Source: Rebecca billardiae RCC1528
Taxonomy: Eukaryota > Protista > Haptophyta
Assembly (NCBI GenBank): GCA_965240325.2
Contig: OZ251250.1
Coordinates: forward strand, 1 to 64,000
DNA length: 64,000 nucleotides
Direction of reading: 5' to 3'
Part shown: positions 6,978-60,262 of the stretch, one piece after another
Numbering within the stretch: the stretch's first letter is position 1
How the letters are laid out: each line of letters starts with the position of its first letter
Translations under genes and position numbers: made by a program
Notes under the pieces: model-generated
Database searches by the model: none
Seen by the model: only the letters and a program-made list of their open reading frames with translations
What the model was told of the DNA's origin: nothing

Positions 6978-8318
6978 ATGGCCAGCACGGCACAGGCGCA
7001 CGCGCGTCGCCTCGTGCTCGACGACCTGCCGCGCGAGGTGCTCGACCGCATACTCGTGTTCCTTACGCCGCGCGACCTCGCCAGCCTGAACGCCACCGCG
7101 CGCCTCTTCCACGCCGCGCCGCCCGGCGGGTGCTCGGCGGTCGAGCGCGCGCTGCGCGAGCGCGCGTGCGCGCGCGGGCACGAGCGCGCGCTGCCGGCGA
7201 CGCTGCCCTCGGGCGTGCGCACGTGGACGGCGGAACTGCTTGCTCGCGAGCGTGTGCTCGAGCTCGCATGCTCACACTCGCCTCCGGTGGCGGCCGGCGT
7301 TGGCTTCAGCGCGTGTGTGGATGCGGAGGGCGGGCTGCACACGTGCGGCGAGGAGGAGGTGCCTGATCAGTCGGAGCCGGAGAGCGACGACGAGGACGAG
7401 GACGGGGAGCCGACGGGCGCGTATCGAGCGCCCGCGGCAATCAGCCACTCGGGCATGCCGGCAGTGCTTGTGCCGACGCACGTCGCCTCCCTCAGCGCCG
7501 TGCGCGTGTGCGCTGTGGCCGCTGGCCGGGCCCACCTGCTCGCGCTGAGCGAGGCCGGCGCCGTGTACGGCTGCGGCGACAACGGGTACGGCCAGCTGGG
7601 GCTGGGCGACGAGGAGGAGCAACGCTCTTTCACACTCGTCGGGTTACCCGCGAGTGAGCCCGTCGTGTGCATCGCGGCAGCCGACGCGCACAGCCTCGCA
7701 CTCACGGCAGCGGGCTGCGCGTACAGCTGGGGCAACAACGGCTTCGGCCAGCTCGGCCACGGCGACGGGCAGCATCAGCACACGCCGAGGCGCATCGAGG
7801 CGCTCGCGGGCGTGCGCGCCGTGCACGTGAGCGCGGGCGGTGGCCACAGCCTGGTGGTGGACAGCGAGGGGACGGTGTACTCGTTTGGGTTTGGTGAGGA
7901 TGCCGCCCTCGGGCACGGAGACACGCGCGAGCAGCTCTCGCCGAGGCGGCTTGACGCCCTCGCGGGTGTGCGCATCGTGCGCGCGTGTGCTGGTGGCCTC
8001 AGCAGCGCGGTGCTGGGCGCGGACGGCAGCGTGCACACGTTTGGGAGCAACAGGTACGGCCAGCTCGGACTGGGGCACGGAGGCGCGGCCCTCGAGGCTC
8101 CCACGCGCGCGGGCGCCCTCGCCCACACGCGCGTGGTGCACTGTGCCATGGGCGACTACCACTCGCTGTTTGTGAGTGCGGACGGCAGCGTGTACGCGTG
8201 CGGCAAGCGGTCGGCTGCGCTCGGCCTCGGCATGAGCGTGGCCGAGCAAGACGAGCCCACCCAGCGGGTGGACGCGCCCGTGCTCGTCGAGACGGCGTGG
8301 TGTGCCCGTGTCTGCTGA
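6978..8318 (+). CDS. F-box + RCC1-repeat protein, paralog 1 (446 aa, six-repeat form)
   Basis: N-terminal F-box-like LDDLPREVLDRILVFLTPRDLASLNATARLF, followed by repeats of AG..H.L.L...G.VY.WG.N..GQLG.G. Confidence 0.88.
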   Translation: MASTAQAHARRLVLDDLPREVLDRILVFLTPRDLASLNATARLFHAAPPGGCSAVERALRERACARGHERALPATLPSGVRTWTAELLARERVLELACSHSPPVAAGVGFSACVDAEGGLHTCGEEEVPDQSEPESDDEDEDGEPTGAYRAPAAISHSGMPAVLVPTHVASLSAVRVCAVAAGRAHLLALSEAGAVYGCGDNGYGQLGLGDEEEQRSFTLVGLPASEPVVCIAAADAHSLALTAAGCAYSWGNNGFGQLGHGDGQHQHTPRRIEALAGVRAVHVSAGGGHSLVVDSEGTVYSFGFGEDAALGHGDTREQLSPRRLDALAGVRIVRACAGGLSSAVLGADGSVHTFGSNRYGQLGLGHGGAALEAPTRAGALAHTRVVHCAMGDYHSLFVSADGSVYACGKRSAALGLGMSVAEQDEPTQRVDAPVLVETAWCARVC

Positions 8319-8566
8319 TGCGTGCCTCTGCCGACGTTCCGCTGCTCCGTTCACTCCGTTGCAGCCGTGGGCGGCGGCCTGGCAGCGGACGCAGCAGCCG
8401 GGCGCGGGCCGCCGCCGGCCCACGGTGCCGCCGCCCAGGCTGGCTGGCGCCTGGCGGTCGGACGGCCAGCGGCGCATCGCCTCGAAACTGAGCTTGTAAG
8501 TGCGTACGTGCCCACTCGGCTTAGCACTGAGCGTCGCACCAATCGGGCTCGACAGTCTCAGATTCC

Positions 8567-11500
8567 GGCAAATTGTCGTCCATGCTGGTGGAGTTATTGT
8601 AAACTCGCGCCAGAAAAAAGGAGAGGGGAGGAAAAAGGAGGGGGAGGAGGGGAGGAGGGAGAAGAGAGGGGGAAGAAGAGAGGGAGGAAAAGGAGGATCA
8701 TCGTAGTCGGTGATAGTGGTCAGTCTGATACAGCTGGGCGCTCGGCCAGGGACATCATGTCTCGGCTACAGACGTGACATCCGTCGACTGTAGGTAGTGG
8801 CTGAATCGGTCACGCCTGCTCGTCGTCGCGCGCTCGGCGCTTCGAAATCACTGTCGTCGTGCCGTGATTGTGACGACAGGCGACGACAGTGACCCTCCGC
8901 CTGCAGGCAAAGCGCACGCCGTCAGACCTGGGCTCAGTGAGGCGGTAGCGGTGCGCACACGCCCTGCCGTCACAAACACAGGCCGATGTATTCAATAGGC
9001 GTCTGGCTGTTTCACTCATCGACCACTGCTGCCGAGCAAGAGGAGCGCTCGAGTGAGGCGCTTCTCAGGCACTGTATCACGCCACGCAGTCAGCGGCCAG
9101 CGCGCAAGTGGGCGGCACTCCGCCCATCAGCAGCCTCCGCACACGTGCGAGCTGTGGTGGAGCTGTGCAGGTGGTCACGCGACAGACGAGAGGAGGCGGC
9201 GGAATGCGGGCAAACAGTCGCCTCAGCCGATGCGCACGAAAGCGTGTGTCGGTCAGCGGATGGCTACCTCGTACACACACGGCACAGTGCACGGCTGCCA
9301 ACAGCACGTGGCACTGGGTGGGTCGCTCTCACAAAGGACTCAGCGCCGCGAGAGCGAGGAGCGCTGGCCTGACGACGGGGGGCGCGAGTGCAGGTGCGGT
9401 GGACCGGTGCCGCGGCCTGTATGCGACTCTCGATGCAAATGCGCGCGCGCGTGCGCGTAAGGGTGTCGTCCAGCCTCTGCGGCACTCAGACTCTGGAAGG
9501 CTGCTGCGGTGCACACATGTGCCTTCCTCAGCCGCCTCACGCGCCAAGTGGCACGCATCACGGCGGCGAGAGCGTCCGCGACGTTGGCGATCGCAGGGCC
9601 GACCCCTAGCAGCTTCAGCGCCTCGTCCTCGGTACCGCCCGGAGCCCAAAGCTGCTGAAGCTCTGGGCCGACCACGATCTCACACTCACCTACCGTGCAG
9701 CAGGGGCCTGCTTTGCGAGCGCGGTCGTACGTGCATGGTCCCTTGCTCCACGGTGTGCTTTCTCTCGCAAATCCGCTGCTGATCGCGCCTCTCAGCCATG
9801 CGCCCAGCGCCGCCGCGACAAGCTGCGCAGCGCCGCGGCTGTCGGCGCGCGCGAGGGCGGCCGCGACTAGGCACGCGACGGCAGGCGGTGCGCTGTGCGG
9901 CGCGGCGGCGGGCGGCGCGTTCGGCACTGCCGGCGCCACAGAGGCCGCGCGCTCGCAGCTGAGATTGCGGTGCGCGTCTACCCATCACCCGCATCGCCGA
10001 CCGCTGGCGGCAGCGGTGGCCGCCGAGGGCCGCGCGCACTGGCGGCGTAGGTGTGCCGCGCGCCGCCGAGCGTGCACGCGGGCGCGCGTGTGTGCGTCAC
10101 GTCGTCGGGAAAGGGCAACGCCACGGCGCCCCGCATCTGCCGCGGCCGGCATGGCGACACGAGATACGGCCGCGTCCCCCGAAGGTCAGCGGCGCTAACA
10201 CCGAAGTCAGCAACGTGAGCAGCGCCAACCTCGACGCTGACAAGAGCTGGACTGCTTCGGCTTAGCTGTCAGACGCCACGTGGGTGGTCAGGCGCGTCCC
10301 CTGCCGACACGTGCATACCGTATGTGCCAGTGGGAGTGATGCACGCGATGCCACGGCGTTTAGCGTCGATCGTGCGTTGCCAAACGCGCCTTGAGGTCGC
10401 TCCCCACGCGCGGACTCAGGGTGTTTGAACGTCTCGCTGGGCGTCAGCGACCAAGTTCGAGGGCCGGAGGAGGGGAGTCAACGAGGGCCAAGGGCGTTGT
10501 CGCCACAAGGCCTCCGCCAACTCGTGCAACCATTGGCTGAGCCAAAAGATGGCAGTCTGAAGTCCTATGTGAGCCAAAAGATAGCCCAATAAGTAAAAGT
10601 CCTGCCCAGGCCCTTCCGGACAGCCAAAAGAGTCCACCAGCATGCCCTAGTAGCCCAGATTCGGCAAATTGTCCATGCTGGTGGAGTTATTGTAAACTCG
10701 CGCGCCAGAAAAACGGAGAGGGGAGGAAAAAGGAGGGGGAGGAGGGAAGGAGGGAGAAGAGAGGGGGAAGAAGAGAGGGAGGAAAAGGAGGATCATCGTA
10801 GTCGGTGATAGTGGTCAGTCTGATACAGCTGGGCGCTCGGCCAGGGACATGTCTCGGCTACAGACGTGACATACGTCGACTGTAGGTAGTGGCTGAATCG
10901 GTCACGCCTGCTCGTCGTCGCGCGCTCGGCGCTTCGAAATCACTGTCGTCGTGCCGTGATTGTGACGACAGGCGACGACAGTGACCCTCCGCCGCAGGCA
11001 AAGCGCACGCCGTCAGACCTGGGCTCAGTGAGGCGGTAGCGGTGCGCACACGCCCTGCCGTCACAAACACAGGCCGAAGCATTCAATGGGTGTCTGGCTG
11101 TTTCACTCATCGACCACTGCTGCCGAGCAAGAGGAGCGCTCGAGTGAGGCGCATCTCAGGCACGGTATCACGCCACGCAGTCAGCGGCCAGCGCGCAAGT
11201 GGGCGGCACTCCGCCCATCAGCAGCCTCCGCACACGTGCGAGCTGTGGTGGAGCTGTGCAGGTGGTCACGCGACAGACGAGAGGAGGCGGCGGAATGTGG
11301 GCGAACAGTCGCCTCAGCCGATGCGCACGAAAGCGTGTGTCGGTCAGCGGATGGCTACCTCGTACACACACGGCACAGTGCACGGCTGCCAACAGCACGT
11401 GGCACTGGGTGGGTCGCTCTCACAAAGGACTCAGCGCCGCGAGAGCGAGGAGCGCTGGCCTGACGACGGGGGGCGCGAGTGCAGGTGCGGTGGACCGGTG

Positions 11501-14500
11501 CCGCGGCCTGTATGCGACTCTCGATGCAAATGCGCGCGCGCGTGCGCGTAAGGGTGTCGTCCAGCCTCTGCGGCACTCAGACTCTGGAAGGCTGCTGCGG
11601 TGCACACATGTGCCTTCCTCAGCCGCCTCACGCGCCAAGTGGCACGCATCACGGCGGCGAGAGCGTCCGCGACGTTGGCGATCGCAGGGCCGACCCCGAG
11701 CAGCTTCAGTGCCTCGTCCTCGGTACCGCCCGGAGCCCAAAGCTGCTGAAGCTCTGGGCCGACCACGATCTCACACTCACCTACCGTGCAGCAGGGGCCT
11801 GCTTCGCGAGCGCGGTCGTACGTGCATGGTCCCTTGCTCCACGGTGTGCTTCTCTCGCAAATCCGCTGCTGATCGCGCCTCTCAGCCATGCGCCCAGCGC
11901 CGCCGCGACAAGCTGCGCAGCGCCGCGGCTGTCGGCGCGCGCGAGGGCGGCCGCGACTAGGCACGCGACGGCAGGCGGTGCGCTGTGCGGCGCGGCGGCG
12001 GGCGGCGCGTTCGGCACTGCCGGCGCCACAGAGGCCGCGCGCTCGCAGCTGAGATTACGGTGCGCGTCTACCCATCACCCGCGTCGCCGACCGCTGGCGG
12101 CAGCGGTGGCCGCCGAGGGCCGCGCGCACTGGCGGCGTAGGTGTGCCGCGCGCCGCCGAGCGTGCACGCGGGCGCGCGTGTGTGCGTCACGTCGTCGGGA
12201 AAGGGCAACGCCACGGCGCCCCGCATCTGCCGCGGCCGGCATGGCGACACGAGATACGGCCGCTTCCCCCGAAGGTCAGCGGCGCTAACACCGAAGTCAG
12301 CAACGTGAGCAGCGCCAACCTCGACGCTGACAAGAGCTGGACTGCTTCGGCTTAGCTGTCAGACGCCACGTGGGTGGTCAGGCGCGTCCCCTGCCGACAC
12401 GTGCATACCGTATGTGCCAGTGGGAGTGATGCACGCGATGCCACGGCGTTTAGCGTCGATCGTGCGTTGCCAAACGCGCCTTGAGGTCGCTCCCCACGCG
12501 CGGACTCAGGGTGTTTGAACGTCTCGCTGGGCGTCAGCGACCAAGTTCGAGGGCCGGAGGAGGGGAGTCAACGAGGGCCAAGGGCGTTGTCGCCACAAGG
12601 CCTCCGCCAACTCGTGCAACCATTGGCTGAGCCAAAAGATGGCAGTCTGAAGTCCTATGTGAGCCAAAAGATAGCCCAATAAGTAAAAGTCCTGCCCAGG
12701 CCCTTCCGGACAGCCAAAAGAGTCCACCAGCATGCCCTAGTAGCCCAGATTCGGCAAATTGTCCATGCTGGTGGAGTTATTGTAAACTCGCGCGCCAGAA
12801 AAACGGAGAGGGGAGGAAAAAGGAGGGGGAGGAGGGAAGGAGGGAGAAGAGAGGGGGAAGAAGAGAGGGAGGAAAAGGAGGATCATCGTAGTCGGTGATA
12901 GTGGTCAGTCTGATACAGCTGGGCGCTCGGCCAGGGACATGTCTCGGCTACAGACGTGACATACGTCGACTGTAGGTAGTGGCTGAATCGGTCACGCCTG
13001 CTCGTCGTCGCGCGCTCGGCGCTTCGAAATCACTGTCGTCGTGCCGTGATTGTGACGACAGGCGACGACAGTGACCCTCCGCCGCAGGCAAAGCGCACGC
13101 CGTCAGACCTGGGCTCAGTGAGGCGGTAGCGGTGCGCACACGCCCTGCCGTCACAAACACAGGCCGAAGCATTCAATGGGTGTCTGGCTGTTTCACTCAT
13201 CGACCACTGCTGCCGAGCAAGAGGAGCGCTCGAGTGAGGCGCATCTCAGGCACGGTATCACGCCACGCAGTCAGCGGCCAGCGCGCAAGTGGGCGGCACT
13301 CCGCCCATCAGCAGCCTCCGCACACGTGCGAGCTGTGGTGGAGCTGTGCAGGTGGTCACGCGACAGACGAGAGGAGGCGGCGGAATGTGGGCGAACAGTC
13401 GCCTCAGCCGATGCGCACGAAAGCGTGTGTCGGTCAGCGGATGGCTACCTCGTACACACACGGCACAGTGCACGGCTGCCAACAGCACGTGGCACTGGGT
13501 GGGTCGCTCTCACAAAGGACTCAGCGCCGCGAGAGCGAGGAGCGCTGGCCTGACGACGGGGGGCGCGAGTGCAGGTGCGGTGGACCGGTGCCGCGGCCTG
13601 TATGCGACTCTCGATGCAAATGCGCGCGCGCGTGCGCGTAAGGGTGTCGTCCAGCCTCTGCGGCACTCAGACTCTGGAAGGCTGCTGCGGTGCACACATG
13701 TGCCTTCCTCAGCCGCCTCACGCGCCAAGTGGCACGCATCACGGCGGCGAGAGCGTCCGCGACGTTGGCGATCGCAGGGCCGACCCCGAGCAGCTTCAGT
13801 GCCTCGTCCTCGGTACCGCCCGGAGCCCAAAGCTGCTGAAGCTCTGGGCCGACCACGATCTCACACTCACCTACCGTGCAGCAGGGGCCTGCTTCGCGAG
13901 CGCGGTCGTACGTGCATGGTCCCTTGCTCCACGGTGTGCTTCTCTCGCAAATCCGCTGCTGATCGCGCCTCTCAGCCATGCGCCCAGCGCCGCCGCGACA
14001 AGCTGCGCAGCGCCGCGGCTGTCGGCGCGCGCGAGGGCGGCCGCGACTAGGCACGCGACGGCAGGCGGTGCGCTGTGCGGCGCGGCGGCGGGCGGCGCGT
14101 TCGGCACTGCCGGCGCCACAGAGGCCGCGCGCTCGCAGCTGAGATTACGGTGCGCGTCTACCCATCACCCGCGTCGCCGACCGCTGGCGGCAGCGGTGGC
14201 CGCCGAGGGCCGCGCGCACTGGCGGCGTAGGTGTGCCGCGCGCCGCCGAGCGTGCACGCGGGCGCGCGTGTGTGCGTCACGTCGTCGGGAAAGGGCAACG
14301 CCACGGCGCCCCGCATCTGCCGCGGCCGGCATGGCGACACGAGATACGGCCGCTTCCCCCGAAGGTCAGCGGCGCTAACACCGAAGTCAGCAACGTGAGC
14401 AGCGCCAACCTCGACGCTGACAAGAGCTGGACTGCTTCGGCTTAGCTGTCAGACGCCACGTGGGTGGTCAGGCGCGTCCCCTGCCGACACGTGCATACCG

Positions 14501-17500
14501 TATGTGCCAGTGGGAGTGATGCACGCGATGCCACGGCGTTTAGCGTCGATCGTGCGTTGCCAAACGCGCCTTGAGGTCGCTCCCCACGCGCGGACTCAGG
14601 GTGTTTGAACGTCTCGCTGGGCGTCAGCGACCAAGTTCGAGGGCCGGAGGAGGGGAGTCAACGAGGGCCAAGGGCGTTGTCGCCACAAGGCCTCCGCCAA
14701 CTCGTGCAACCATTGGCTGAGCCAAAAGATGGCAGTCTGAAGTCCTATGTGAGCCAAAAGATAGCCCAATAAGTAAAAGTCCTGCCCAGGCCCTTCCGGA
14801 CAGCCAAAAGAGTCCACCAGCATGCCCTAGTAGCCCAGATTCGGCAAATTGTCCATGCTGGTGGAGTTATTGTAAACTCGCGCGCCAGAAAAACGGAGAG
14901 GGGAGGAAAAAGGAGGGGGAGGAGGGAAGGAGGGAGAAGAGAGGGGGAAGAAGAGAGGGAGGAAAAGGAGGATCATCGTAGTCGGTGATAGTGGTCAGTC
15001 TGATACAGCTGGGCGCTCGGCCAGGGACATGTCTCGGCTACAGACGTGACATACGTCGACTGTAGGTAGTGGCTGAATCGGTCACGCCTGCTCGTCGTCG
15101 CGCGCTCGGCGCTTCGAAATCACTGTCGTCGTGCCGTGATTGTGACGACAGGCGACGACAGTGACCCTCCGCCGCAGGCAAAGCGCACGCCGTCAGACCT
15201 GGGCTCAGTGAGGCGGTAGCGGTGCGCACACGCCCTGCCGTCACAAACACAGGCCGAAGCATTCAATGGGTGTCTGGCTGTTTCACTCATCGACCACTGC
15301 TGCCGAGCAAGAGGAGCGCTCGAGTGAGGCGCATCTCAGGCACGGTATCACGCCACGCAGTCAGCGGCCAGCGCGCAAGTGGGCGGCACTCCGCCCATCA
15401 GCAGCCTCCGCACACGTGCGAGCTGTGGTGGAGCTGTGCAGGTGGTCACGCGACAGACGAGAGGAGGCGGCGGAATGTGGGCGAACAGTCGCCTCAGCCG
15501 ATGCGCACGAAAGCGTGTGTCGGTCAGCGGATGGCTACCTCGTACACACACGGCACAGTGCACGGCTGCCAACAGCACGTGGCACTGGGTGGGTCGCTCT
15601 CACAAAGGACTCAGCGCCGCGAGAGCGAGGAGCGCTGGCCTGACGACGGGGGGCGCGAGTGCAGGTGCGGTGGACCGGTGCCGCGGCCTGTATGCGACTC
15701 TCGATGCAAATGCGCGCGCGCGTGCGCGTAAGGGTGTCGTCCAGCCTCTGCGGCACTCAGACTCTGGAAGGCTGCTGCGGTGCACACATGTGCCTTCCTC
15801 AGCCGCCTCACGCGCCAAGTGGCACGCATCACGGCGGCGAGAGCGTCCGCGACGTTGGCGATCGCAGGGCCGACCCCGAGCAGCTTCAGTGCCTCGTCCT
15901 CGGTACCGCCCGGAGCCCAAAGCTGCTGAAGCTCTGGGCCGACCACGATCTCACACTCACCTACCGTGCAGCAGGGGCCTGCTTCGCGAGCGCGGTCGTA
16001 CGTGCATGGTCCCTTGCTCCACGGTGTGCTTCTCTCGCAAATCCGCTGCTGATCGCGCCTCTCAGCCATGCGCCCAGCGCCGCCGCGACAAGCTGCGCAG
16101 CGCCGCGGCTGTCGGCGCGCGCGAGGGCGGCCGCGACTAGGCACGCGACGGCAGGCGGTGCGCTGTGCGGCGCGGCGGCGGGCGGCGCGTTCGGCACTGC
16201 CGGCGCCACAGAGGCCGCGCGCTCGCAGCTGAGATTACGGTGCGCGTCTACCCATCACCCGCGTCGCCGACCGCTGGCGGCAGCGGTGGCCGCCGAGGGC
16301 CGCGCGCACTGGCGGCGTAGGTGTGCCGCGCGCCGCCGAGCGTGCACGCGGGCGCGCGTGTGTGCGTCACGTCGTCGGGAAAGGGCAACGCCACGGCGCC
16401 CCGCATCTGCCGCGGCCGGCATGGCGACACGAGATACGGCCGCTTCCCCCGAAGGTCAGCGGCGCTAACACCGAAGTCAGCAACGTGAGCAGCGCCAACC
16501 TCGACGCTGACAAGAGCTGGACTGCTTCGGCTTAGCTGTCAGACGCCACGTGGGTGGTCAGGCGCGTCCCCTGCCGACACGTGCATACCGTATGTGCCAG
16601 TGGGAGTGATGCACGCGATGCCACGGCGTTTAGCGTCGATCGTGCGTTGCCAAACGCGCCTTGAGGTCGCTCCCCACGCGCGGACTCAGGGTGTTTGAAC
16701 GTCTCGCTGGGCGTCAGCGACCAAGTTCGAGGGCCGGAGGAGGGGAGTCAACGAGGGCCAAGGGCGTTGTCGCCACAAGGCCTCCGCCAACTCGTGCAAC
16801 CATTGGCTGAGCCAAAAGATGGCAGTCTGAAGTCCTATGTGAGCCAAAAGATAGCCCAATAAGTAAAAGTCCTGCCCAGGCCCTTCCGGACAGCCAAAAG
16901 AGTCCACCAGCATGCCCTAGTAGCCCAGATTCGGCAAATTGTCCATGCTGGTGGAGTTATTGTAAACTCGCGCGCCAGAAAAACGGAGAGGGGAGGAAAA
17001 AGGAGGGGGAGGAGGGAAGGAGGGAGAAGAGAGGGGGAAGAAGAGAGGGAGGAAAAGGAGGATCATCGTAGTCGGTGATAGTGGTCAGTCTGATACAGCT
17101 GGGCGCTCGGCCAGGGACATGTCTCGGCTACAGACGTGACATACGTCGACTGTAGGTAGTGGCTGAATCGGTCACGCCTGCTCGTCGTCGCGCGCTCGGC
17201 GCTTCGAAATCACTGTCGTCGTGCCGTGATTGTGACGACAGGCGACGACAGTGACCCTCCGCCGCAGGCAAAGCGCACGCCGTCAGACCTGGGCTCAGTG
17301 AGGCGGTAGCGGTGCGCACACGCCCTGCCGTCACAAACACAGGCCGAAGCATTCAATGGGTGTCTGGCTGTTTCACTCATCGACCACTGCTGCCGAGCAA
17401 GAGGAGCGCTCGAGTGAGGCGCATCTCAGGCACGGTATCACGCCACGCAGTCAGCGGCCAGCGCGCAAGTGGGCGGCACTCCGCCCATCAGCAGCCTCCG

Positions 17501-41169: not shown

Positions 41170-43420
41170 CTCGGGCCGGGGGTTTGGCGGTAGCGAAGTT
41201 TGTAACTTTAACAAACTGTTTCAGCTTCGTCGGCGTGCGCTATTTTGAGCGCGCGCCTATGAAGGCAGCTGCTATTCACAGGCGAGTCGCCTATGAAGCC
41301 GGCTCCTATGTGTCAATACCTTACGGGTACTTGGGAGCGGGCGCTCATATGGCTCACCAGGCCGCGAGGCTGCGCCATGCCACCCATCTGCACGTCGCCG
41401 AATCGGCCGCAAATCGGATGCGAGAGGCGAGGCGGAGGACGGCAGACATTCGCCATGAGCGTGGTGTCGATCCTTGTTGCGTGCGCCACCGTCGTGCTTG
41501 CTCCCGCCGCCGGGAAGCAGGCGCGCAAGCTGCCGTCCACGCAGGAGGACAATTCCTATCGTTCAACGCATGCGCAGAGCTCTCAATCCAAGTACATGGC
41601 GGTTGGGCGACCCTCTCGCCGTTCGTGGACGCTGCCATACCGTACTGCGCGAACTCTTGCTGCTACCTGCTCCGCCCAGCTGGCACGAAGGTGGGGCGCG
41701 AGGTGTTCTACTGGCAGACGTCTGGCAGTAGACACCCTGACCTCGCAGCTGATGCTTCCCTCAGTGTGCTGTCCCAGTTGACAGACATGTCGTGGCTTGC
41801 GTCTCGGGGGCAGGTATTCATCTACCGTAGCGCTTCGCCGAGCTACGCCCAGCGCAAGCCGCCTCAGTGAGCACCGCTCTGAAAGCCTCACCGACCTCTG
41901 CGTTCTATCGCGTGCCGCCTCTGAATGCGTGATGCGGTTGAGCTGCCGTTGCACGCGGCGTGTGGCTCGAGCTCGCGCGGGGCTTGGCGACGCACACGTA
42001 CGTGCGGAAAGCCGCATTGCCCTCGGCCTACGCCGCGTTCGACCGCGCGATGGGCGCGGGCACGCTCACCGGTCAGCGTGCGAATGAGCTGCGCGCGCTG
42101 ATCGCCGGTGAGCTCAGAGCTGCGCGCGCTGCCGGCAGTCATCCCTGCGAGTGCTGCGGGGCGAAGCGGTGGGCGAGGCGCCAGCAGGAAAGCTCGCAAT
42201 CGTCGACTCAGCGTTCGTCATGCTGCCCCCGCTGCCACCTGACGCGATTGGCCTGCAGTTGAGGGCGCCAAGGCGACGCTGCGCCCGCTCCTGGGGGCAA
42301 CCGGCGGCTGAGGACGAGTCGAGCGATGCAGTTTGACTATGGGCTGACCGTTGACGATGATGCTAATTGCTACACGTACTACTACTGATGACGATTTTGA
42401 CGCGCTGCTGGTCTCGGCGGTCATCAGCTGAGCCTGCGTGTGAGACTTGTTTCTCTCAATGCTGCCATCCGCCGCCGGATATGTGACTGCATGTGAGCCC
42501 ACGATTATCACTTGAGCTCGGCGCCAGCCCGATCGAAAGCAGCCTGAGCCTGAGGCCCCGGGCCCGGACGGGCGGACAGTCTGACAAGCTGCAGACGACT
42601 CACAGACGATCAGCTGCTGACAGATGATCACGGCGACATGATGACGATGGGCGCAGTCGCGGAAGGCCCACTTGCCACGGCCTACTTCAGGATGCGCAAA
42701 GGGGTGGTCAACATTAGATATCTGCTAAGGTGACAGGAGCTGTAGCCGCGGGCCGCAGCAGCGGCGCGCAGCGCGCATGCATGCACGCGCGCCTGACAGA
42801 TGCTCCGGGCACGAATGATTGCCCTCAGCTCGACCCAGACGAGTTGAAGCATGGCAGAGTGGCGCCGTGCACACGTTCACATCGATGGCCTTGCGACCAT
42901 ACAGTCTTGCCTTGTACGCCCGCGAGGTCAAACCACAGCTGTGGCTTTGGATCCGAGGTCCGCCGAGCACCACCGCGGTACAGGCCCAAGCCTTGGCAGT
43001 GCGAGCAGTCCTCTTGAGTTCGGAGATCTGGAAAGCCTGCATCACCTGGCCCACAGCGCGCAGCATCGCGAAGCTGTGGGCCCGATCGATCCCCGTGCGA
43101 ACAAGACCAAGGGCAATGCTCGCTACGTGTGAGCAGGTGCTGATTCTCCTACTGTACGGCACCCGCTCGGGAACTTGTGCCCCGGTCTCGACATCCGGGT
43201 ATCGCCCGGATCATGGGCCGGGGTATTGGTCGCCGCGCCGCCCGTCCCATCAACGCAACAATCGCAGCTGCGGCCTGCTGCACCTCCGGTCCCGCGTCCT
43301 CCCCCGGCGCGGCCATCACCGTCGTGCGGCATGGATCGCGTCCGCCACAGTCCCGCGATTTTCCGAAAAACCAACGGCCGATTTTTCGGAAAATCCTTAC
43401 CACCAAACCCCCGGCCCGAG
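41170..43420. mobile_element. 2251-bp non-autonomous element with TA target duplication (Tc1/mariner-like)
   Basis: 23-bp TIRs CTCGGGCCGGGGGTTTGG(C/T)GGTA flanked by TA (41168-41169, 43421-43422). Absent from the paralogous spacer at ~6874-6890. A 14-bp-stem hairpin lies at 43357-43395. Confidence 0.82.
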
Positions 43421-43517
43421 TAGCTATGATCTTGAGTCTGCAGCTCAGCCAACGGACACTGGACAGCCCGCGGCGACAGCGCTTGACCGCACCGACTGCG
43501 CGGCGCCGGCGGGAGCG

Positions 43518-44858
43518 ATGGCCAGCACGGCACAGGCGTACGCGCGTCGCCTCGCACTCGACGACGTGCCGCGCGAGGTGCTCGACCGCATACTCGTGTT
43601 CCTTACGCCGCGCGACCTCGCCAGCCTGAACGCCACCGCGCGCCTCTTCCACGCCGCGCCGCCCGGCGGGTGCTCGGCGGTCGAGCGCGCGCTGCGCGAG
43701 CGCGCGTGCGCGCGCGGGCACGAGCGCGCGCTGCCGGCGACGCTGCCCTCGGGCGTGCGCACGTGGACGACGGAACTGCTTGCTCGCGAGCGTGTGCTCG
43801 AGCTCGCATGCTCACACTCGCCTCCGGTGGCGGCCGGCGTTGGCTTCAGCGCGTGTGTGGACGCGGAGGGCGGGCTGCACACGTGCGGCGAGGAGGAGGT
43901 GCCTGATCAGTCGGAGCCGGAGAGCGACGACGAGGACGAGGACGGGGAGCCGACGGGCGCGTATCGAGCGCCCGCGGCAATCAGCCACTCGGGCATGCCG
44001 GCAGTGCTTGTGCCGACGCGCGTCGCCTCCCTCAGCGCCGTGCGCGTGTGCGCTGTGGCCGCTGGCCGGGCCCACCTGCTTGCGCTGAGCGACGCCGGCG
44101 CCGTGTACGGCTGCGGCGACAACGGGTTTGGCCAGCTGGGGCTGGGCCACACGGAGGAGCAACGCGTGTTCGCTCTCGTCGGGCTGCTCACGAGTGAGCC
44201 CGTCGTGTGCATCGCGGCAGGCATCGAGCACAGCCTCGCGCTCACCGCCGCGGGCTGCGCGTACAGCTGGGGCCACAACGGCTTCGGCCAGCTCGGCCAC
44301 GGCGACGGGCAGCATCAGCACACGCCGAGGCGCATCGAGGCGCTCGCGGGCGTGCGCGCCGTGCACGTGAGCGCGGGCGGTGGCCACAGCCTGGTGGTGG
44401 ACAGCGAGGGGACGGTGTACTCGTTTGGGTTTGGTGAGGATGCCGCCCTCGGGCACGGAGACACGCGCGAGCAGCTCACGCCGAGGCGGCTTGACGCCCT
44501 CGCGGGTGTGCGCATCGTGCGCGCGTGTGCTGGTGGCCTCAGCAGCGCGGTGCTGGGCGCGGACGGCAGCGTGCACACGTTTGGGAGCAACGGGTACGGC
44601 CAGCTCGGACTGGGGCACGGAGGCGCGGCCCTCGAGGCTCCCACGCGCGCGGGCGCCCTCGCCCACACGCGCGTGGTGCACTGTGCCATGGGCTACCACC
44701 ACTCGCTGTTTGTGAGTGCGGACGGCAGCGTGTACGCGTGCGGCGAGCGGTCGGCTGCGCTCGGGCTCGGCATGAGCGAGGCCGAGCAAGACGAGCCCAA
44801 CCATCGGGTTGACGCGCCCGTGCTCGTCGAGACGGCGTGGTGTGCCCGTGTCTGCTGA
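43518..44858 (+). CDS. F-box + RCC1-repeat protein, paralog 4 (446 aa, six-repeat form; recent duplicate of paralog 1)
   Basis: MASTAQ start at 43518. Shares the acidic insert and the same repeat deletion with paralog 1. Confidence 0.88.
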   Translation: MASTAQAYARRLALDDVPREVLDRILVFLTPRDLASLNATARLFHAAPPGGCSAVERALRERACARGHERALPATLPSGVRTWTTELLARERVLELACSHSPPVAAGVGFSACVDAEGGLHTCGEEEVPDQSEPESDDEDEDGEPTGAYRAPAAISHSGMPAVLVPTRVASLSAVRVCAVAAGRAHLLALSDAGAVYGCGDNGFGQLGLGHTEEQRVFALVGLLTSEPVVCIAAGIEHSLALTAAGCAYSWGHNGFGQLGHGDGQHQHTPRRIEALAGVRAVHVSAGGGHSLVVDSEGTVYSFGFGEDAALGHGDTREQLTPRRLDALAGVRIVRACAGGLSSAVLGADGSVHTFGSNGYGQLGLGHGGAALEAPTRAGALAHTRVVHCAMGYHHSLFVSADGSVYACGERSAALGLGMSEAEQDEPNHRVDAPVLVETAWCARVC

Positions 44859-45288: not shown

Positions 45289-46758
45289 ATGGCCAGCACG
45301 GCACAGGCGCACGCGCGTCGCCTCGCGCTCGACGACGTGCCGCGCGAGGTGCTCGACCGCATCATCGTGCTCCTACCGCCGCGTGACCTCGCCAGCCTGA
45401 ACGCCACCGCGCGCCTCTTCCACGCCGCGCCGCCCGGCGGGTGCTCGGCGGTCGAGCGCGCGCTGCGCGAGCGCGCGTGCGCGCGCGGGCACGAGCTCGC
45501 GCTGCCGGCGACGCTGCCCGCCGACGTGCGCACTTGGACACAGGAGCTGTTCGTGCGCGAGCGCGTGCTCGAGCTCGCATGCGCACACTCGCCTCCCGTG
45601 GCGGCCGGCGTTGGCTTCAGCGCGTGTGTGGACGCGGAGGGCGGGCTGCACACGTGCGGCGAGGAGGAGGTGGGCGACGAGGACACCTGGCAGCCGACGG
45701 GCGAGTATCGGGCGGATATGGCAATCGGTCATCCGGGCGTGCGGGCAGTGCGCGTGCCGACGCACGTTGCCTCCCTCGGCGCGGTGCGCGTGGTCGCGGT
45801 GGCGGCTGGAGACAACCACCTGCTCGCGCTGAGCGACACCGGCGCCGTGTACGGCTGCGGCTACAACGACTCCGGCCAGCTTGGGCTGGGCGACACGGAG
45901 GAGCAACGCTCATTCACTCTCGTCGGGCTACCCGCGAGTGAGCCCGTCGTGTGCATCGCGGCAGGCACCGACCACAGCCTCGCGCTCACTGCCGCGGGCT
46001 GCGCGTACAGCTGGGGCCACAACTACTGCGGCCAGCTCGGCCACGGCGACAAGAAGCGGCGGTGGGAGCCGACGCGCATCGAGGCGCTGGACGGCGTGCG
46101 CGTGGGTGGGATGGCCGCGTGCGGTGCCCACACGCTGCTTCTCGATGTGTACGGCGCCGTCTACTCGTGCGGCAGTGGCGAGTTTGGCCAGCTCGGCCAC
46201 GGCGACGAGCTGCATCAGCACACGCCGAGGCGCATCGAGGCGCTCGCGGGCGTGCGCGCCGTGCACGTGAGCGCGGGCGATGGCCACAGCCTGGTGGTGG
46301 ACAGCGAGGGGGCGGTGTACTCGTTTGGGTGTGGTGAAGATGGCGCGCTCGGGCACGGAGACACGCGCTCGCAACTCACGCCGAAGCAGCTTGACGCCCT
46401 CGCGGGTGTGCGCATCGTGCGCGCGTGTGCGGGCAGCTGCGGCAGCGCGGTGCTGGGCGCGGACGGCAGCGTGCACACGTTTGGGCACAACGAGGACGGC
46501 CAGCTCGGGCTGGGATCTGGAGAGGTGCGCCACGGCGCCCCGTCGCGCGTGGGTGCCCTCGCCCACGCGCGCGTGGTGCAGTGTGCCATGAGCTACCACC
46601 ACTCGCTGTTTGTGAGTGCGGACGGCAGCGTGTACGCGTGCGGCAAGCGCTCGGCTGCGCTCGGCCTCGGCATGAGCGAGGCCGAGCAAGACGAGCCCAC
46701 CCAGCTGGTGGACACGCCCGCGTGCATCGAGACGGCGTGGTGTGCCCGTGTCTGCTGA
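45289..46758 (+). CDS. F-box + RCC1-repeat protein, paralog 5 (489 aa)
   Basis: Intact ORF with F-box and seven repeats. Confidence 0.88.
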   Translation: MASTAQAHARRLALDDVPREVLDRIIVLLPPRDLASLNATARLFHAAPPGGCSAVERALRERACARGHELALPATLPADVRTWTQELFVRERVLELACAHSPPVAAGVGFSACVDAEGGLHTCGEEEVGDEDTWQPTGEYRADMAIGHPGVRAVRVPTHVASLGAVRVVAVAAGDNHLLALSDTGAVYGCGYNDSGQLGLGDTEEQRSFTLVGLPASEPVVCIAAGTDHSLALTAAGCAYSWGHNYCGQLGHGDKKRRWEPTRIEALDGVRVGGMAACGAHTLLLDVYGAVYSCGSGEFGQLGHGDELHQHTPRRIEALAGVRAVHVSAGDGHSLVVDSEGAVYSFGCGEDGALGHGDTRSQLTPKQLDALAGVRIVRACAGSCGSAVLGADGSVHTFGHNEDGQLGLGSGEVRHGAPSRVGALAHARVVQCAMSYHHSLFVSADGSVYACGKRSAALGLGMSEAEQDEPTQLVDTPACIETAWCARVC

Positions 46759-47089: not shown

Positions 47090-48198
47090 CAAGGGTAGTA
47101 CAGTAAGGGTGAGCAACTCCGCTGGCGACAGCCGCGAAGGTCGGCAGCCCTCTGTTTGCCGCGAGCGGAGCGGAGCGAGTACTATCAGCGGCGGAGGGCG
47201 CTGAGGCCGCGCACGGCGTGAGGCGCGGCGTCGGCCGAGTCGGTCCGCGGAGGATGCGCGGCGCTCGGCCCGCTGCGCAGCGGCAGTGCGCCTCACTTGT
47301 TCCGTGCGCCGTCCTCCGCGTCGCCTCCTTCCCGCCTTGGAGCAGCACGCATGTGCGCGCCGCCACCTTGAAGGCGGCACAGGGTTGCTCAGACGACCGC
47401 GCGCGCGTGGCGCGCGACTTGGTCGGCTGCGCGCGCGCGCCGCCGCGGTGCAAGGTAGCGCCGCCGCATGCGCGCGCCGTGCCCGCGCGAGCCTTTGCTC
47501 ACGGCCATCTCATGAGCGTAGTGCTCGCTTGTCTGCTTGCTCTCACGAATGATTTGCTGTGCCTCACGCTGGCACTCGTCGGGTCGATCAGCGAGGTGTT
47601 GAGTGACATTGGATACCCAGGACGAAGGCCTAGTCTTGTCTATTCCTTCTCAGCAAGAATGCAAGTGGACGCTAAGGCTCCGCATCGATGGTACCAACAC
47701 TCTCGCCGCTGTCTTTTCCAGCTTCCCGTCAGTCCGCAAGTCGGATGCCAAGCAGCATTCGACATGTGTGTGAGGTCGCACTCAGGTCCGCGCACACGCT
47801 CTCGCGCTGGCACGGCGCGCGCATGCGGCGGCGCTACCTTGCACCGCGGCGGCGCGCGCGCGCAGCCGACCAAGTCGCGCGCCACGCGCGCGCGGTCGTC
47901 TGAGCAGGCCCGTGCCGCCTTCAAGGTGGCGGCGCGCACATGCGTGCTGCTCCAAGGCGGGAAGGAGGCGACGCGGAGGACGGCGCTCGGGGCAAAGTGA
48001 GGCGCACTGCCGCTGCGCAGCGGGCCGAGCGCCGCGCATCCTCCGCGGACCGACTCGGCCGACGCCGCGCCTCACGCCGTGCGCGGCCTCAGCGCCCTCC
48101 GCCGCTGATAGCACTCGCTCCGCTCCGCTCGCGGCAAACAGAGGGCTGCCGACCTTCGCGGCTGTCGCCAGCGGAGTTGCTCACCCTTACTACCCTTG
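47090..48198. mobile_element. 1109-bp foldback element with ~400-bp inverted arms, CAAGGG termini and 7-bp TSD (P superfamily, Galileo-like architecture)
   Basis: Arms ~47090-47491 and ~47801-48198 are near-perfect reverse complements. TSD GACAAGC at 47083-47089 and 48199-48205. The empty site gggacaagcgcccc is seen at ~45226-45239 and ~50046-50059. Confidence 0.9.
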
Positions 48199-48254
48199 GA
48201 CAAGCGCCCTGCCGGCGCGGCGGCCGGCGCCGACACTTGCTCGTGGCGGGAGCG

Positions 48255-49733
48255 ATGGCCAGCACGGCACAGGCGCAACACACGCGTCGCCTCGCGCTCG
48301 ACGATCTGCCGCGCGAGGTGCTCGACCGCATCCCCGTATTCCTACCGCCGCGCGACCTCGCCAGCCTGATCGCCACCGCGCGCCTCTTCCACGCCGCGCC
48401 GCCCGGCGGGTGCTCAGCGGTCGAGCGCGCGCTGCGCGAGCGCGCGTGCGCGCGCGGGCACGATCGCGCGCTGCCGACGACGCTGCCCTCCGACGTGCGC
48501 ACGTGGACGGGGGAGCTGCTCGTGCGCGAGCGCGTGCTCGAGCTCGCATGCGCACACTCGCCTCCCGTGGCGGCCGGCGTTGGCTTCAGCGCGTTTGTGG
48601 ACGCAGAGGGCGGGCTGCACACGTGCGGCGAGGAGGAGGTGCGGGACGAGGACACCAGGCAGCGGACGGGCGAGTATCGGGCGGATATGGCAATCGGTCA
48701 ATCGGGCGTGCGGGTAGCGCGCGTGCCAACGCACGTCGCCTCCCTCAGCGCGGTGCGCGTGGTTGCTGTGGCCGCTGGGCAGTACCACCTGCTCGCGCTG
48801 AGCTACGCCGGCGCAGTGTACGGCTGCGGCGACGACAGCGCCGGCCAGCTGGGGCTGGGCGACACGGACAGGGAGGAGGAACGCTCATTCGCTCTCGTCG
48901 GGCTCCCCGCACGTGAGCCCGTCGTCTGCATAGCTGCAGGCAACACGCACAGCCTCGCGCTCACCGCCGCGGGCTGCGTTTACAGCTGGGGCTTCAACAA
49001 CTGCGGCCAGCTCGGCCACGGCGACACGGAGGAGCGGTGGGAGCCGACGCGCATCGAGGCGCTGGACGGCGTGCGCGTGGGTGGCCTCGCCGCGGGCGGT
49101 TCGCACACGCTGCTGCTTTCGAGCGGTGGCGCCGTGTACTCGTGTGGCCGCTGCTACTTCGGCCAGCTCGGCCACGGCGACCAGCAGGCTCAGCACACGC
49201 CAAGGCGCATCGAGGCGCTCGCAGGCGTGCGCGCCGTGCACGTGAGCGCGGGCGAGGAGCACAGCCTGGTGGTGGACAGCGAGGGGGCGGTGTACTCGTC
49301 TGGGTTTGGTGCGAATGACGCGCTCGGGCACGGAGCCACTCGCGATGAGCTCACGCCGAGGCGGCTTGACGCCCTGGCGGGTGTGCGCATCGTGCGTGCG
49401 TGTGCTGGTGGCCTCAGCAGCGCGGTGCTGGGCGCGGACGGCAGCGTGCACACGTTTGGGCACAGCCGCAATGGCCAGCTCGGACTGGGGCACGGAGGCG
49501 CGGCCGCCGAGGCTCCCACGCGCGTGGGTGCTCTCGCACATGTGGGCGTGGTGCACTGTGCCATGGGCTTTTCCCACTCGCTGTTTGTGAGTGCGGACGG
49601 CAGCGTGTACTCGTGCGGCGAGCGGTCGGCTGCGCTCGGCCTCGGCATGAGCGAGGCCGAGCAAGATGAGCCCATCCAGCCGGTGGACGCGCCCGTGCTC
49701 GTCGAGACGGCGTGGTGTGCCCGTGTCTGCTGA
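48255..49733 (+). CDS. F-box + RCC1-repeat protein, paralog 6 (492 aa)
   Basis: Intact ORF. The F-box carries substitutions (RIPVF, SLIAT); seven repeats. Confidence 0.86.
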   Translation: MASTAQAQHTRRLALDDLPREVLDRIPVFLPPRDLASLIATARLFHAAPPGGCSAVERALRERACARGHDRALPTTLPSDVRTWTGELLVRERVLELACAHSPPVAAGVGFSAFVDAEGGLHTCGEEEVRDEDTRQRTGEYRADMAIGQSGVRVARVPTHVASLSAVRVVAVAAGQYHLLALSYAGAVYGCGDDSAGQLGLGDTDREEERSFALVGLPAREPVVCIAAGNTHSLALTAAGCVYSWGFNNCGQLGHGDTEERWEPTRIEALDGVRVGGLAAGGSHTLLLSSGGAVYSCGRCYFGQLGHGDQQAQHTPRRIEALAGVRAVHVSAGEEHSLVVDSEGAVYSSGFGANDALGHGATRDELTPRRLDALAGVRIVRACAGGLSSAVLGADGSVHTFGHSRNGQLGLGHGGAAAEAPTRVGALAHVGVVHCAMGFSHSLFVSADGSVYSCGERSAALGLGMSEAEQDEPIQPVDAPVLVETAWCARVC

Positions 49734-50103: not shown

Positions 50104-51573
50104 ATGGCCAGCACGGCACAGGCGCACGCGCGTCGCCTCGCGCTCGACGACCTGCCGCGCGAGGTGCTCGACCGCGTCCTCGTGTCCCTGCTGCCGCGCG
50201 ACCTCGCCAGCCTGAACGCCACCGCGCGCCTCTTCCACGCCGCGCCGCCCGGCGGGTGCTCGGCGGTCGAGCGCGCGCTGCGCGAGCGCGCGTGCACGCG
50301 CGGGCACGAGCGCGCGCTACCGACATCGCTGCCCTCGGGCGTGCGCACGTGGACGGCGGAACTGCTCGTGCGCGAGCGGATGCTCGAGCTCGCATGCGCA
50401 CACTCGCTTCCCGTGGCGGCCGGCGACGGCTTCAGCGCGTTTGTGGACGCGGAGGGCGGGCTGCACACATGCGGCGAGCAGGAGGTGCGGGGCGAGGCCA
50501 CCTTGCAGTGGACGGGCGAGTATCGTTCACCTGTGGCAACCGGTCATTCGGGCGTGCCGGAAGTGTGCGTGCCAACGCACGTCGCCTCCCTCAGCGCCGT
50601 GCGCGTGGTCGCTGTGGCCGCTGGCTGGGACCACCTGCTCGTGCTGAGCGAGGCCGGCGCCGTGTACGGCTGCGGCTACAACGGCTCCGGCCAGCTCGGT
50701 CTGGGCCACACGGAGGAGCAACGCGCTTTCGCTCTCGTCGGCCTCTTCGCACCTGAGCCCGTCGTGTGCATCGCGGCAGGCTATGCGCACAGCCTCGCGC
50801 TCACGGCCGCGGGCTGCGCGTACAGCTGGGGCTACAACTACTACGGCCAGCTCGGCCACGGCGACACTCAGCGGCGGCTGCAGCCGACGCGCATCGAGGC
50901 GCTGGACGGCGTGCGCGTGGGCGGGATGGCCGTGGGCGTTGCCCACACGCTGCTTCTCGATGTGTACGGCGCCGTCTACTCGTGCGGCAGTGGCGAGTTT
51001 GGCCGTCTCGGCCACGGCGACCAGCAGCATCAGCACACGCCGAGGCGCATCGAGGCGCTCGCGGGCGTGCGCGCCGCGCACGTGAGCGCGGGCGGTCAGC
51101 ACAGCCTGGTGGTGGACAGCGAGGGGGCGGTGTACTCGTTTGGGTGTGGTGAAGATGGCGCGCTCGGGCACGGAGACACGCGCTCGCAACTCACGCCGAG
51201 GCGGCTTGACGCCCTCGCGGGTGTGCGCATCGTGCGCGCGTGTGCGGGCAGCCACAGCAGCGCGGTGCTGGGCGCGGACGGCAGCGTGCACACGTTTGGG
51301 CACAACGAGGACGGTCAGCTCGGGCTGGGATCTGGAGAGGTGCGCCACGGCGCCCCGTCGCGCGTGGGTGCCCTCGCCCACGCGCGCGTGGTGCACTGTG
51401 CCATGGGCTTCTCCCACTCGCTGTTTGTGAGTGCGGACGGCAGCGTGCACGCGTGCGGCAGGCGCTCAGCCGCGCTCGGCCTCGGCATGAGCGAGGCCGA
51501 GCGAGACGAGCCCACCCAGCGGATTGGCACGCCCGCGTGCATCGGCACGGCGTGGTGTGCCCGTGTCTGCTGA
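50104..51573 (+). CDS. F-box + RCC1-repeat protein, paralog 7 (489 aa)
   Basis: Intact ORF with F-box and seven repeats. Confidence 0.88.
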   Translation: MASTAQAHARRLALDDLPREVLDRVLVSLLPRDLASLNATARLFHAAPPGGCSAVERALRERACTRGHERALPTSLPSGVRTWTAELLVRERMLELACAHSLPVAAGDGFSAFVDAEGGLHTCGEQEVRGEATLQWTGEYRSPVATGHSGVPEVCVPTHVASLSAVRVVAVAAGWDHLLVLSEAGAVYGCGYNGSGQLGLGHTEEQRAFALVGLFAPEPVVCIAAGYAHSLALTAAGCAYSWGYNYYGQLGHGDTQRRLQPTRIEALDGVRVGGMAVGVAHTLLLDVYGAVYSCGSGEFGRLGHGDQQHQHTPRRIEALAGVRAAHVSAGGQHSLVVDSEGAVYSFGCGEDGALGHGDTRSQLTPRRLDALAGVRIVRACAGSHSSAVLGADGSVHTFGHNEDGQLGLGSGEVRHGAPSRVGALAHARVVHCAMGFSHSLFVSADGSVHACGRRSAALGLGMSEAERDEPTQRIGTPACIGTAWCARVC

Positions 51574-53481: not shown

Positions 53482-53892
53482 TGCGCGCCTCTGCCGACGC
53501 TCAGCTGCTCCGTTGCAGCCGTGGGCGGCGGTGGCAGCGGACGCAGCAGCCGGGCACGGGCCGCCACCGGCCCACGGCGCCGCCGCCCAGGCTGGCTGGC
53601 GCCTGGCGGTCGGACGGCCAGCAGCGTGTCGCCACGAATCTGACGAGTTTGAAGTGCGTGCCCACTCGGCTTATCATAGACAGAGGCAGGCACTACGTCC
53701 ATCCGCCGGCGACGGACTAGATTCCTCAATCCTGGCCAGGGCGGGTCCGCGTCGGACGCTCTGTGACACCTCACACCAGACACTGACAGTCCGGGCAGCT
53801 CAGGCAACGGACAGTGGATGCCACAGCGCGCGGCGACAGCGCTTCGCTCAGTGCTCACCGACCGCACCGACTGCGCGGCGCCGGCGGGAGCG

Positions 53893-55362
53893 ATGGCCAG
53901 CACGGCACAGGCGCACGCGCGTCGCCTCGTGCTCGACGACCTGCCACGTGAGGTGCTCGACCGCATCCTCGTGTTCCTACCGCCGCGCGACCTCGCCAGC
54001 CTGAACGCCACCGCGCGCCTCTTCCACGCCGCGCCGCCCGGCGGGTGCTCGGCGGTCGAGCGCGCGCTGCGCGAGCGCGCGTGCGCGCGCGGGCACGATC
54101 GCGCGCTGCCGGCGCCGCTGCCCGCCGACGTGTGCACTTGGACGGAGGAGCTGCTCGTGCGCGAGCGCGTGCTCGAGCTCGCATGCGCACACTCGCCTCC
54201 CGTGGCGGCCGGCGTTGGCTTCAGCGCGTGTGTGGACGCGGAGGGCGGGCTGCACACGTGCGGCGAGCAGGCGGTGTGGGACGAGGACACCGAGGAGCCG
54301 ACGGGCGAGTATCGAGCGCGTATGGCAACCGGTCATCCGGGCGTGCGGGCAGTGCGCGTGCCGACGCACGTTGCCTCCCTCGGCGCGGTGCGCGTGGTCG
54401 CGGTGGCGGCTGGAGACGACCACCTGCTCGCGCTGAGCGACACCGGCGCCGTGTACGGCTGCGGCTACAACGACTCCGGCCAGCTTGGGCTGGGCGACAC
54501 GGAGGAGCAACGCTCATTCGCTCTCGTCGGGCTACCCGCACGTGAGCCCGTCGTGTGCATCGTTGCAGGCCACGGGCACAGCCTCGCGCTCACGGCAGCG
54601 GGCTGCGCGTACAGCTGGGGTGCCAACTGGTGCGGCCAGCTCGGCCACGGCGACACGCAGCAGCGGTGGGAGCCTGCGCGCATCGAGGCGCTGGACGGCG
54701 TGCGCGTGGGCGGGATGGCCGCGGGCGGTGCCCACACGCTGCTTATCGATGTGTACGGCGCCGTCTACTCGTGCGGCCTTGGCCACTTAGGCCGGCTCGG
54801 CCACGGCGACCAGCAGGATCAGCACACGCCAAGGCGCATCGAGGCGCTCGCGGGCGTGCGCGCCGCGCACGTGAGCGCGGGCGGTGGCCACAGCCTGGTG
54901 GTGGACAGCGAGGGGACGGTGCACTCGTTTGGGTTTGGTAAGTTTGGCGCGCTCGGGCATGGAGACACGCGCCCGCAACTCACGCCGAGGCGGCTTGACG
55001 CCCTCGCGGGTGTGCGCATCGTGCGCGCATGTGCGCGCCGCCGCGGCAGCGCGGTGCTGGGCGCGGACGGCAGCGTGCACACGTTTGGGTACAACAGGTA
55101 CGGCCAGCTCGGGCTGGGGCACGGAGGCGCGGCCGCCGAGTCTCCCACGCGCGTGGGTGCCCTCGCCCACGCGCGCGTGGTGCACTGTGCCATGGGCGAC
55201 TACCACTCGCTGTTTGTGAGTGCGGACGGCAGCGTGCACGCGTGCGGCCAGCGCTCGGCTGCGCTCGGCCTCGGCATGAGCGCGGCCGAGCAAGACGAGC
55301 CCACCCAGCGGGTTGACACGCCCGCGTGCATCGGGACGGCGTGGTGTGCCCGCGTCTGCTGA
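53893..55362 (+). CDS. F-box + RCC1-repeat protein, paralog 9 (489 aa)
   Basis: Intact ORF with F-box and seven repeats. Confidence 0.88.
   Translation: MASTAQAHARRLVLDDLPREVLDRILVFLPPRDLASLNATARLFHAAPPGGCSAVERALRERACARGHDRALPAPLPADVCTWTEELLVRERVLELACAHSPPVAAGVGFSACVDAEGGLHTCGEQAVWDEDTEEPTGEYRARMATGHPGVRAVRVPTHVASLGAVRVVAVAAGDDHLLALSDTGAVYGCGYNDSGQLGLGDTEEQRSFALVGLPAREPVVCIVAGHGHSLALTAAGCAYSWGANWCGQLGHGDTQQRWEPARIEALDGVRVGGMAAGGAHTLLIDVYGAVYSCGLGHLGRLGHGDQQDQHTPRRIEALAGVRAAHVSAGGGHSLVVDSEGTVHSFGFGKFGALGHGDTRPQLTPRRLDALAGVRIVRACARRRGSAVLGADGSVHTFGYNRYGQLGLGHGGAAAESPTRVGALAHARVVHCAMGDYHSLFVSADGSVHACGQRSAALGLGMSAAEQDEPTQRVDTPACIGTAWCARVC

Positions 55363-60195: not shown

Positions 60196-60262
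<67 letters not shown>

Follow-up and report, generated by a model that had tools for sequence, protein, structure and literature searches.

Closest described systems

In plants, rapidly evolving S-locus F-box paralogues (SLF/SFBB) degrade a changing toxin via SCF (Skp1-Cullin1-F-box). Here, we describe nine F-box-like/RCC1 genes from the haptophyte alga Rebecca billardiae RCC1528, all located between positions 6978 and 55362 of a 64,000-nucleotide stretch of DNA (contig OZ251250.1, positions 1 to 64,000 of the forward strand; hereafter "the window"). We consider it fairly likely that these genes encode SCF substrate receptors, in a family that was amplified in tandem within one lineage and has a diversifying propeller face.

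Two known proteins share the domain order, with an F-box at the N-terminus and an RCC1 domain at the C-terminus. In yeast Saf1 the F-box binds Skp1 and the C-terminus binds the substrate Aah1 (10.1101/636902), while mammalian FBXO24 co-precipitates SKP1, CUL1, and RBX1 (PMC10932545). Each of these is a conserved single-copy gene whose host substrates are fixed, whereas the algal gene is multicopy, mosaic, and positively selected. They are likened here by architecture, neither being among the best 120 matches of the algal proteins.

The evolutionary pattern is shared with the unstable F-box families of Caenorhabditis (FTH/FBA2 type), in which the F-box is under purifying selection and the substrate-binding part under positive selection, and for which species-specific tandem expansion and a proposed role in foreign-protein recognition have been described (PMC8665587). 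A constrained F-box and a positively selected binding domain are found in both. The algal family differs in its putative binding fold (an RCC1 propeller), its unicellular host, and its single-exon genes (86–97% identity); in addition, selection is resolved to 4–5 residues per blade, and blade loss and segment exchange are seen. In C. tropicalis, the KSS antidotes are F-box paralogues that evolve rapidly and use SCF to degrade selfish toxins (PMC12680543). The algal genes resemble both these and SLF/SFBB in being rapidly evolving F-box paralogues, but no linked toxin or S-RNase-like gene was seen in the window, and the binding domain is different.

The closest solved folds, at only ~30% identity, are UVR8 and the RCC1-like domains of HERC proteins. 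Unlike HERC, the algal proteins have no HECT domain. Their variable residues occupy the dimer-face positions of UVR8, but identity as a UV-B photoreceptor was rejected because the tryptophan triad and its GWRHT motifs are not conserved; the equivalent positions are hypervariable, with only sporadic tryptophans.

The F-box plus RCC1 architecture and the diversifying F-box pattern are thus each already known, and their combination in an algal family is a new variant. A literature search, with most subscription journals outside its coverage, found no paper on an F-box/RCC1 family in haptophytes; the mentions of "RCC1" in PMC4438323 are strain numbers and not the protein domain.

Nine intact copies

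The nine genes are plus-strand open reading frames (ORFs) with a common start context. They encode paralogues of 446–498 amino acids (aa), and their pairwise DNA identity is 86–97%.

6978-8318, plus strand: g1, F-box-like/RCC1, 446 aa, six repeats (without blade 4), acidic insert in the blade 1 loop
29586-31055, plus strand: g2, 489 aa, seven repeats
31457-32929, plus strand: g3, 490 aa, seven repeats
43518-44858, plus strand: g4, 446 aa, six repeats; arose recently by duplication of g1 (96.9% DNA identity)
45289-46758, plus strand: g5, 489 aa, seven repeats; reference for numbering and for the structure model
48255-49733, plus strand: g6, 492 aa; the copy that has diverged furthest, its first F-box helix having a Leu-to-Pro change
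50104-51573, plus strand: g7, 489 aa
51985-53481, plus strand: g8, 498 aa; acidic insert common to g8, g1, and g4
53893-55362, plus strand: g9, 489 aa; F-box-like Pfam score over the curated cut-off
33151-33522, plus strand: duplicated 3' end of a glycosyltransferase gene, with which the g1-to-g4 duplication begins

A preliminary description, made from the sequence alone, had called this a nine-gene array of intact, intronless paralogues with a common repeat scaffold. Intactness was borne out, as every frame is open throughout, without a stop or frameshift. "Intronless" is right in the sense of an uninterrupted ORF, which is its sole basis. There are indeed nine genes, but they are not contiguous, being separated by a 21-kb tandem array and by ~10 kb of inserted elements. 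The repeat scaffold is complete in the seven copies that have seven blades, but not in g1 and g4, which have six repeats, one complete RCC1 repeat (blade 4, 52 aa) being absent from each with the frame kept open. Two copies of one repeat-end motif are fused at this deletion, which suggests unequal crossing-over. The g1-to-g4 duplication carried along the 3' end of the glycosyltransferase gene lying upstream; this DXD-type gene, at 5480–6694 and directly upstream of g1, is the source of the duplicate at 33151–33522.

The F-box-like N-terminus

Profile evidence for an F-box motif at the N-terminus is borderline but consistent. The domain is given below for g5, with omega, the ratio of nonsynonymous to synonymous substitution rates, from the models described further on.

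45325-45468, plus strand: F-box-like domain of g5, residues 13–60, three helices, omega 0.11–0.22

In each copy Pfam places an F-box-like match at residues 14–46, ahead of an RCC1-like domain that begins at about residue 100. Against PF12937, which has a curated cut-off of 24.3 bits, g9 scores 24.6, g1 24.0, and g2 18.9 bits, and the N-terminus of g9 alone reaches 28 bits; the same match is found in 18 of 25 related family N-termini. When a family profile was compared with the PDB, the top nine matches were all F-box proteins, each of them weak (among them FBXO22, FBXO31, AnkB, FBXW7, cyclin F, and GID2, with E-values of 0.008–0.3). The F-box that the preliminary description had recognized is therefore at or just below the curated cut-off of its hidden Markov model, and the PDB profile matches agree with it. 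In the predicted structure of g5, N-terminal helices span residues 19–27, 31–40, and 42–45 with a predicted local distance difference test (pLDDT) score of 80–91. This is also the most constrained part of the gene, with a proportion of nonsynonymous differences (pN) of 0.03 alongside its low omega.

The propeller and its variable face

The face is defined as 30 loop positions, set by repeat register across seven blades, and is listed here in the numbering of g5.

45586-46755, plus strand: RCC1 propeller of g5, residues 100–489
g5 face residues, first part: 108-109, 175-176, 192/194/195, 227-228, 244/246/247, 279-280, 296/298/299
g5 face residues, second part: 331-332, 348/350/351, 383-384, 400/402/403, 436-437, 453

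The RCC1 fold claimed for these proteins is well placed: PF25390 (RCC1-like) matches with 215–242 bits against a cut-off of 150, and the AlphaFold model of g5 (pLDDT 92) predicts three helices at the N-terminus, two more in the linker, and a seven-bladed propeller that superposes on UVR8 with a Z-score of 55.6 and a root-mean-square deviation (rmsd) of 1.6 Å over 359 residues. The variable loop set after strand A aligns with UVR8 W233 and W337, and the set after strand C with W198, W250, and W302. All five tryptophans are at the UVR8 dimer interface (PMC7455749), which puts both loop sets on one face, as had been proposed; please note that "one face" comes from this alignment and not from model coordinates or measured distances.

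Variation is focused on the same loop positions of each repeat. The six lists of variable residues drawn up earlier all agree exactly with the alignment. Of the 27 propeller columns in which at least four amino acids occur, 22 fall within the 30 face positions (Fisher p 2e-24), and three of the other five are in adjoining inter-blade loop positions. On the face pN is 0.42 (0.37–0.46); on the scaffold it is 0.065, with a proportion of synonymous differences (pS) of 0.13. Fourfold-site diversity is 0.11, and the non-coding 3' flank has a diversity of 0.06. "Almost invariant," as both F-box and scaffold had been described, suits the F-box but not the scaffold, where pN is ~0.07 and some 30% of codons are near omega 1. 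Even in the young pair g1/g4, 8 of 25 face residues differ, whereas outside the face only 17 of 421 do (p 2e-5). Exchange of a single tract spanning blades 2–3 accounts for some of these face differences; others are isolated codons in blades 6–7, with states that recur in other copies.

Gene conversion and positive selection

The nine copies are gene-conversion mosaics. Incompatibility between neighbouring informative sites is 0.31 compared with 0.56 after shuffling, identical tracts of 60–210 bp join changing pairs of partners, and the nearest copy changes along the gene. A recombination test confined to synonymous sites was underpowered (22 sites, p 0.06).

Mosaicism matters for the choice of test. 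Plain single-tree models give large likelihood-ratio test (LRT) statistics (110.7 for M2a/M1a and 111.1 for M8/M8a), but neutral simulations with mosaic trees and doublet mutations inflate the plain M2a/M1a statistic up to 71.5, and the plain tests are therefore not accepted alone. The LRT falls to 74.6 when nine local trees are used and to 43.9 when doublets are added. A fixed-site model that allows 1, 5, 10, or 16 local trees as well as doublet mutations gives a face omega of 3.1–4.3 (LRT 61–80), with the F-box at the 0.11–0.22 given above. The tree-free ratio of face pN to scaffold pS is 3.18, a value reached by none of 360 neutral simulations (maximum 2.64) and reproduced by simulations with omega 3–6 on the face. 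These selection models are our own implementations, applied to nine sequences. Positive selection on one propeller face is well supported, and a recombination-aware analysis, of the general kind called for in the preliminary description, keeps omega above 1 there after local trees and doublet mutations are allowed for.

The wider family and a second expansion

At E up to 1e-10, the N-terminal module occurs in at least 222 protein clusters (clustered at 50% identity); of its 54 long matches, 51 have RCC1 repeats. Most family matches are unnamed metagenomic proteins, the named ones being Emiliania huxleyi fragments; a separate search with the N-terminus alone returned two unnamed proteins. In a quick tree the nine window genes form one clade with a support of 99 in the Shimodaira-Hasegawa-like approximate likelihood-ratio test (SH-aLRT), and the nearest outside protein is 54% identical. 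This is a lineage-specific tandem expansion.

A second, star-like clade, also from a quick tree, consists of 17 marine-metagenome proteins and is sister to an E. huxleyi protein; a match at 71% lies in the E. huxleyi locus. Face divergence in this clade is 0.87 compared with 0.27 elsewhere, and five members with DNA give a face omega of 3.3–4.5 at the same positions (LRT 36–42), although this evidence is weaker, coming from mixed samples at 80–83% identity with near-identical repeats that are prone to misalignment. Other lineages of the family are single and conserved, and clusters of near-identical environmental alleles are almost without face variation, which argues for diversification in some lineages only. 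The family is broad and probably haptophyte, with at least two separate diversifying expansions.

The annotation of the E. huxleyi locus (9734–15731) deserves a comment. The 447-aa "E3 ubiquitin ligase" recorded there seems to be a merger of two F-box/RCC1-like genes 4 kb apart, and the merged model seems also to miss the F-box start.

Proposed function and alternatives

How might such a family work? The F-box would dock onto Skp1, as its sequence and predicted fold suggest, and the propeller may present the ~30 loop residues of one face, positioned by the UVR8 alignment, as a target-binding surface. Tandem and segmental duplication makes the copies, gene conversion homogenises and reshuffles them, and selection, on the statistical evidence above, favours new face residues. 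Each copy would then bind a different and changing protein and deliver it to the proteasome. Selection of this kind usually stems from a genetic antagonist, and by analogy the likeliest targets would be proteins of a virus, of an endogenous viral or mobile element, or of a selfish toxin system. An SCF role is likely; an immune role is possible. Viral or non-self targets are a guess from analogy, and toxins of selfish elements, or endogenous elements, would suit the evidence just as well. We suggest only tentatively that the haptophyte F-box/RCC1 repertoire, large and expanded more than once, is a form of intracellular innate immunity in which gene conversion would shuffle segments the size of a blade, selection would rewrite one propeller face, and giant-virus, Polinton-like virus, or mobile-element proteins would be ubiquitinated.

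Several points weigh against the proposal of SCF receptors with a selected binding face. None of the nine proteins was found in the protein collection searched, and no RNA run with the genes was found. The F-box scores are no more than borderline, and in g6 helix 1 contains a proline. The g1/g4 model fits seven-blade propellers at an rmsd of 1.9 Å, a fit that does not in itself show a closed six-blade ring. No linked target lies within the window. Loop positions are naturally variable in any RCC1 repeat; the set of face sites was suggested by the same data, though applied to seven blades by register; and omega would come out higher if silent sites are under constraint, as may be the case in a GC-rich genome.

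On sequencing data, one run (DNA or RNA) matched 7% of words, its short contigs being mostly <90% alike. A Logan contig from run ERR14847148 (DNA or RNA) is identical to 55458–57065, which places this organism in that run, and two diverged F-box/RCC1 family members are also encoded there.

Could the copies be diversifying binders with no SCF output? The F-box-like part would then be degenerate or a decoy (sequestering Skp1 or serving as a scaffold), and the face would be under selection either to bind a parasite factor or to evade one. The borderline scores and the helix-breaking change in g6 speak for this. However, the F-box is the most constrained part of the gene, and the module is kept across those 222 or more clusters, nearly always ahead of RCC1 repeats. 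We judge this account unlikely.

About equally improbable, and really a sub-case of the SCF receptor proposal that differs in its target, is a role in self/non-self recognition during sex or in toxin-antidote drive, rather than in infection. Plant S-locus F-boxes, with their collaborative non-self recognition, offer one precedent. The fast-evolving F-box antidotes of C. tropicalis, which degrade selfish toxins via SCF, offer another (PMC12680543). Against it, none of the copies has a candidate gene for a toxin or ligand linked to it within the window.

Neutral or relaxed divergence of redundant copies, with exposed loops that would accept any residue and with gene conversion and multi-base mutations mimicking selection, fares slightly worse and is largely refuted. 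The inflation of plain M2a/M1a without selection and the drop in LRT from 110.7 to 43.9 once local trees and doublets are included speak for it. Yet a face simulated at omega 1 gives a ratio of only 1.35–1.75 and ~1.9 amino acids per site, where 3.18 and 4.0 are observed (and 2.64 is the neutral maximum), and variability at fourfold sites beside the face shows no significant rise (0.16 vs 0.11, p 0.28).

Very improbable is a targeted mutational mechanism (retroelement-like or hypermutation) that writes diversity into face codons: amino-acid-changing codon pairs do have 2–3 base differences more often on the face (60%) than elsewhere (40%), but all four bases vary without base specificity, no template repeat or reverse transcriptase lies within the window, and the targets would be 1–2 codons scattered every 16–35 codons with adjacent silent sites not raised. 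A diversity-generating retroelement was likewise rejected, there being no adenine-specific variation and no template or reverse transcriptase within the window.

Inserted elements and neighbouring genes

The spacers of the SCF receptor candidates contain the following.

8559-29472, no strand: ten head-to-tail 2090-bp units in the g1-g2 spacer, outside the genes
33523-40964, no strand: 7.4-kb insertion with short terminal inverted repeats (TIRs) and a 7-bp target duplication
41167-43423, no strand: 2.26-kb element with TIRs, upstream of g4
47090-48199, no strand: 1.1-kb foldback element lying 55 bp upstream of the start of g6, with inverted arms of ~400 bp and a 7-bp target duplication

The 2090-bp units have imperfect TIRs of 23 bp and an identical 7-mer at 11 of 11 junctions. 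Units 2–10 are identical, which means that the amplification is either very recent or an assembly artefact. The unit has no Rfam match and no clear ORF, and an Rfam search of the whole window gave no match either. Nested within the 7.4-kb insertion are a perfect 55-bp inverted repeat (33898/39383) and another inverted pair at 36034–36766; no transposase ORF was seen in it. The foldback element has a 67% similar stretch at 228–503 and is the part of the window best matched by the sequencing run in which 7% of words matched. Three of the four TIR-type spacer insertions have 7-bp target duplications, and all have inserted outside the coding sequences of the nine genes, which are free of TIR elements. 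A perfect 31-bp inverted repeat (57036–57066 and 58675–58705) around 1.6 kb is probably another small element.

Flanking genes include a hybrid histidine kinase with introns (738–3948, plus strand; HisKA, HATPase, and a probable receiver domain) and, at 59030–62300, a Pre-PUA/PUA gene with introns that is probably eIF2D-like, judging by its domains. Convergent with g9 is an NAD-dependent epimerase-like gene (55817–56902, minus strand). Its best matches are from Diacronema lutheri (66%) and Pavlovales sp. CCMP2436 (62%), these being best hits only; they make a Pavlovales haptophyte the most likely host, in keeping with the alga first supposed.

What the family may offer

To our knowledge, molecular virus recognition in bloom-forming algae is largely open. 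With ~30 positively selected residues on one face, this compact family of single-exon genes provides direct experimental handles, and the second expansion, sister to an E. huxleyi gene, suggests that the question can be approached in the model of E. huxleyi and its virus (E. huxleyi-EhV). The family can also be regarded as a binder library made by nature, with the RCC1 scaffold kept fixed. Should the targets turn out to be host proteins, it would still be an unusually sharp case of paralogue diversification; if the immune reading is true, haptophytes, an ecologically central group, would have their first defined recognition repertoire.

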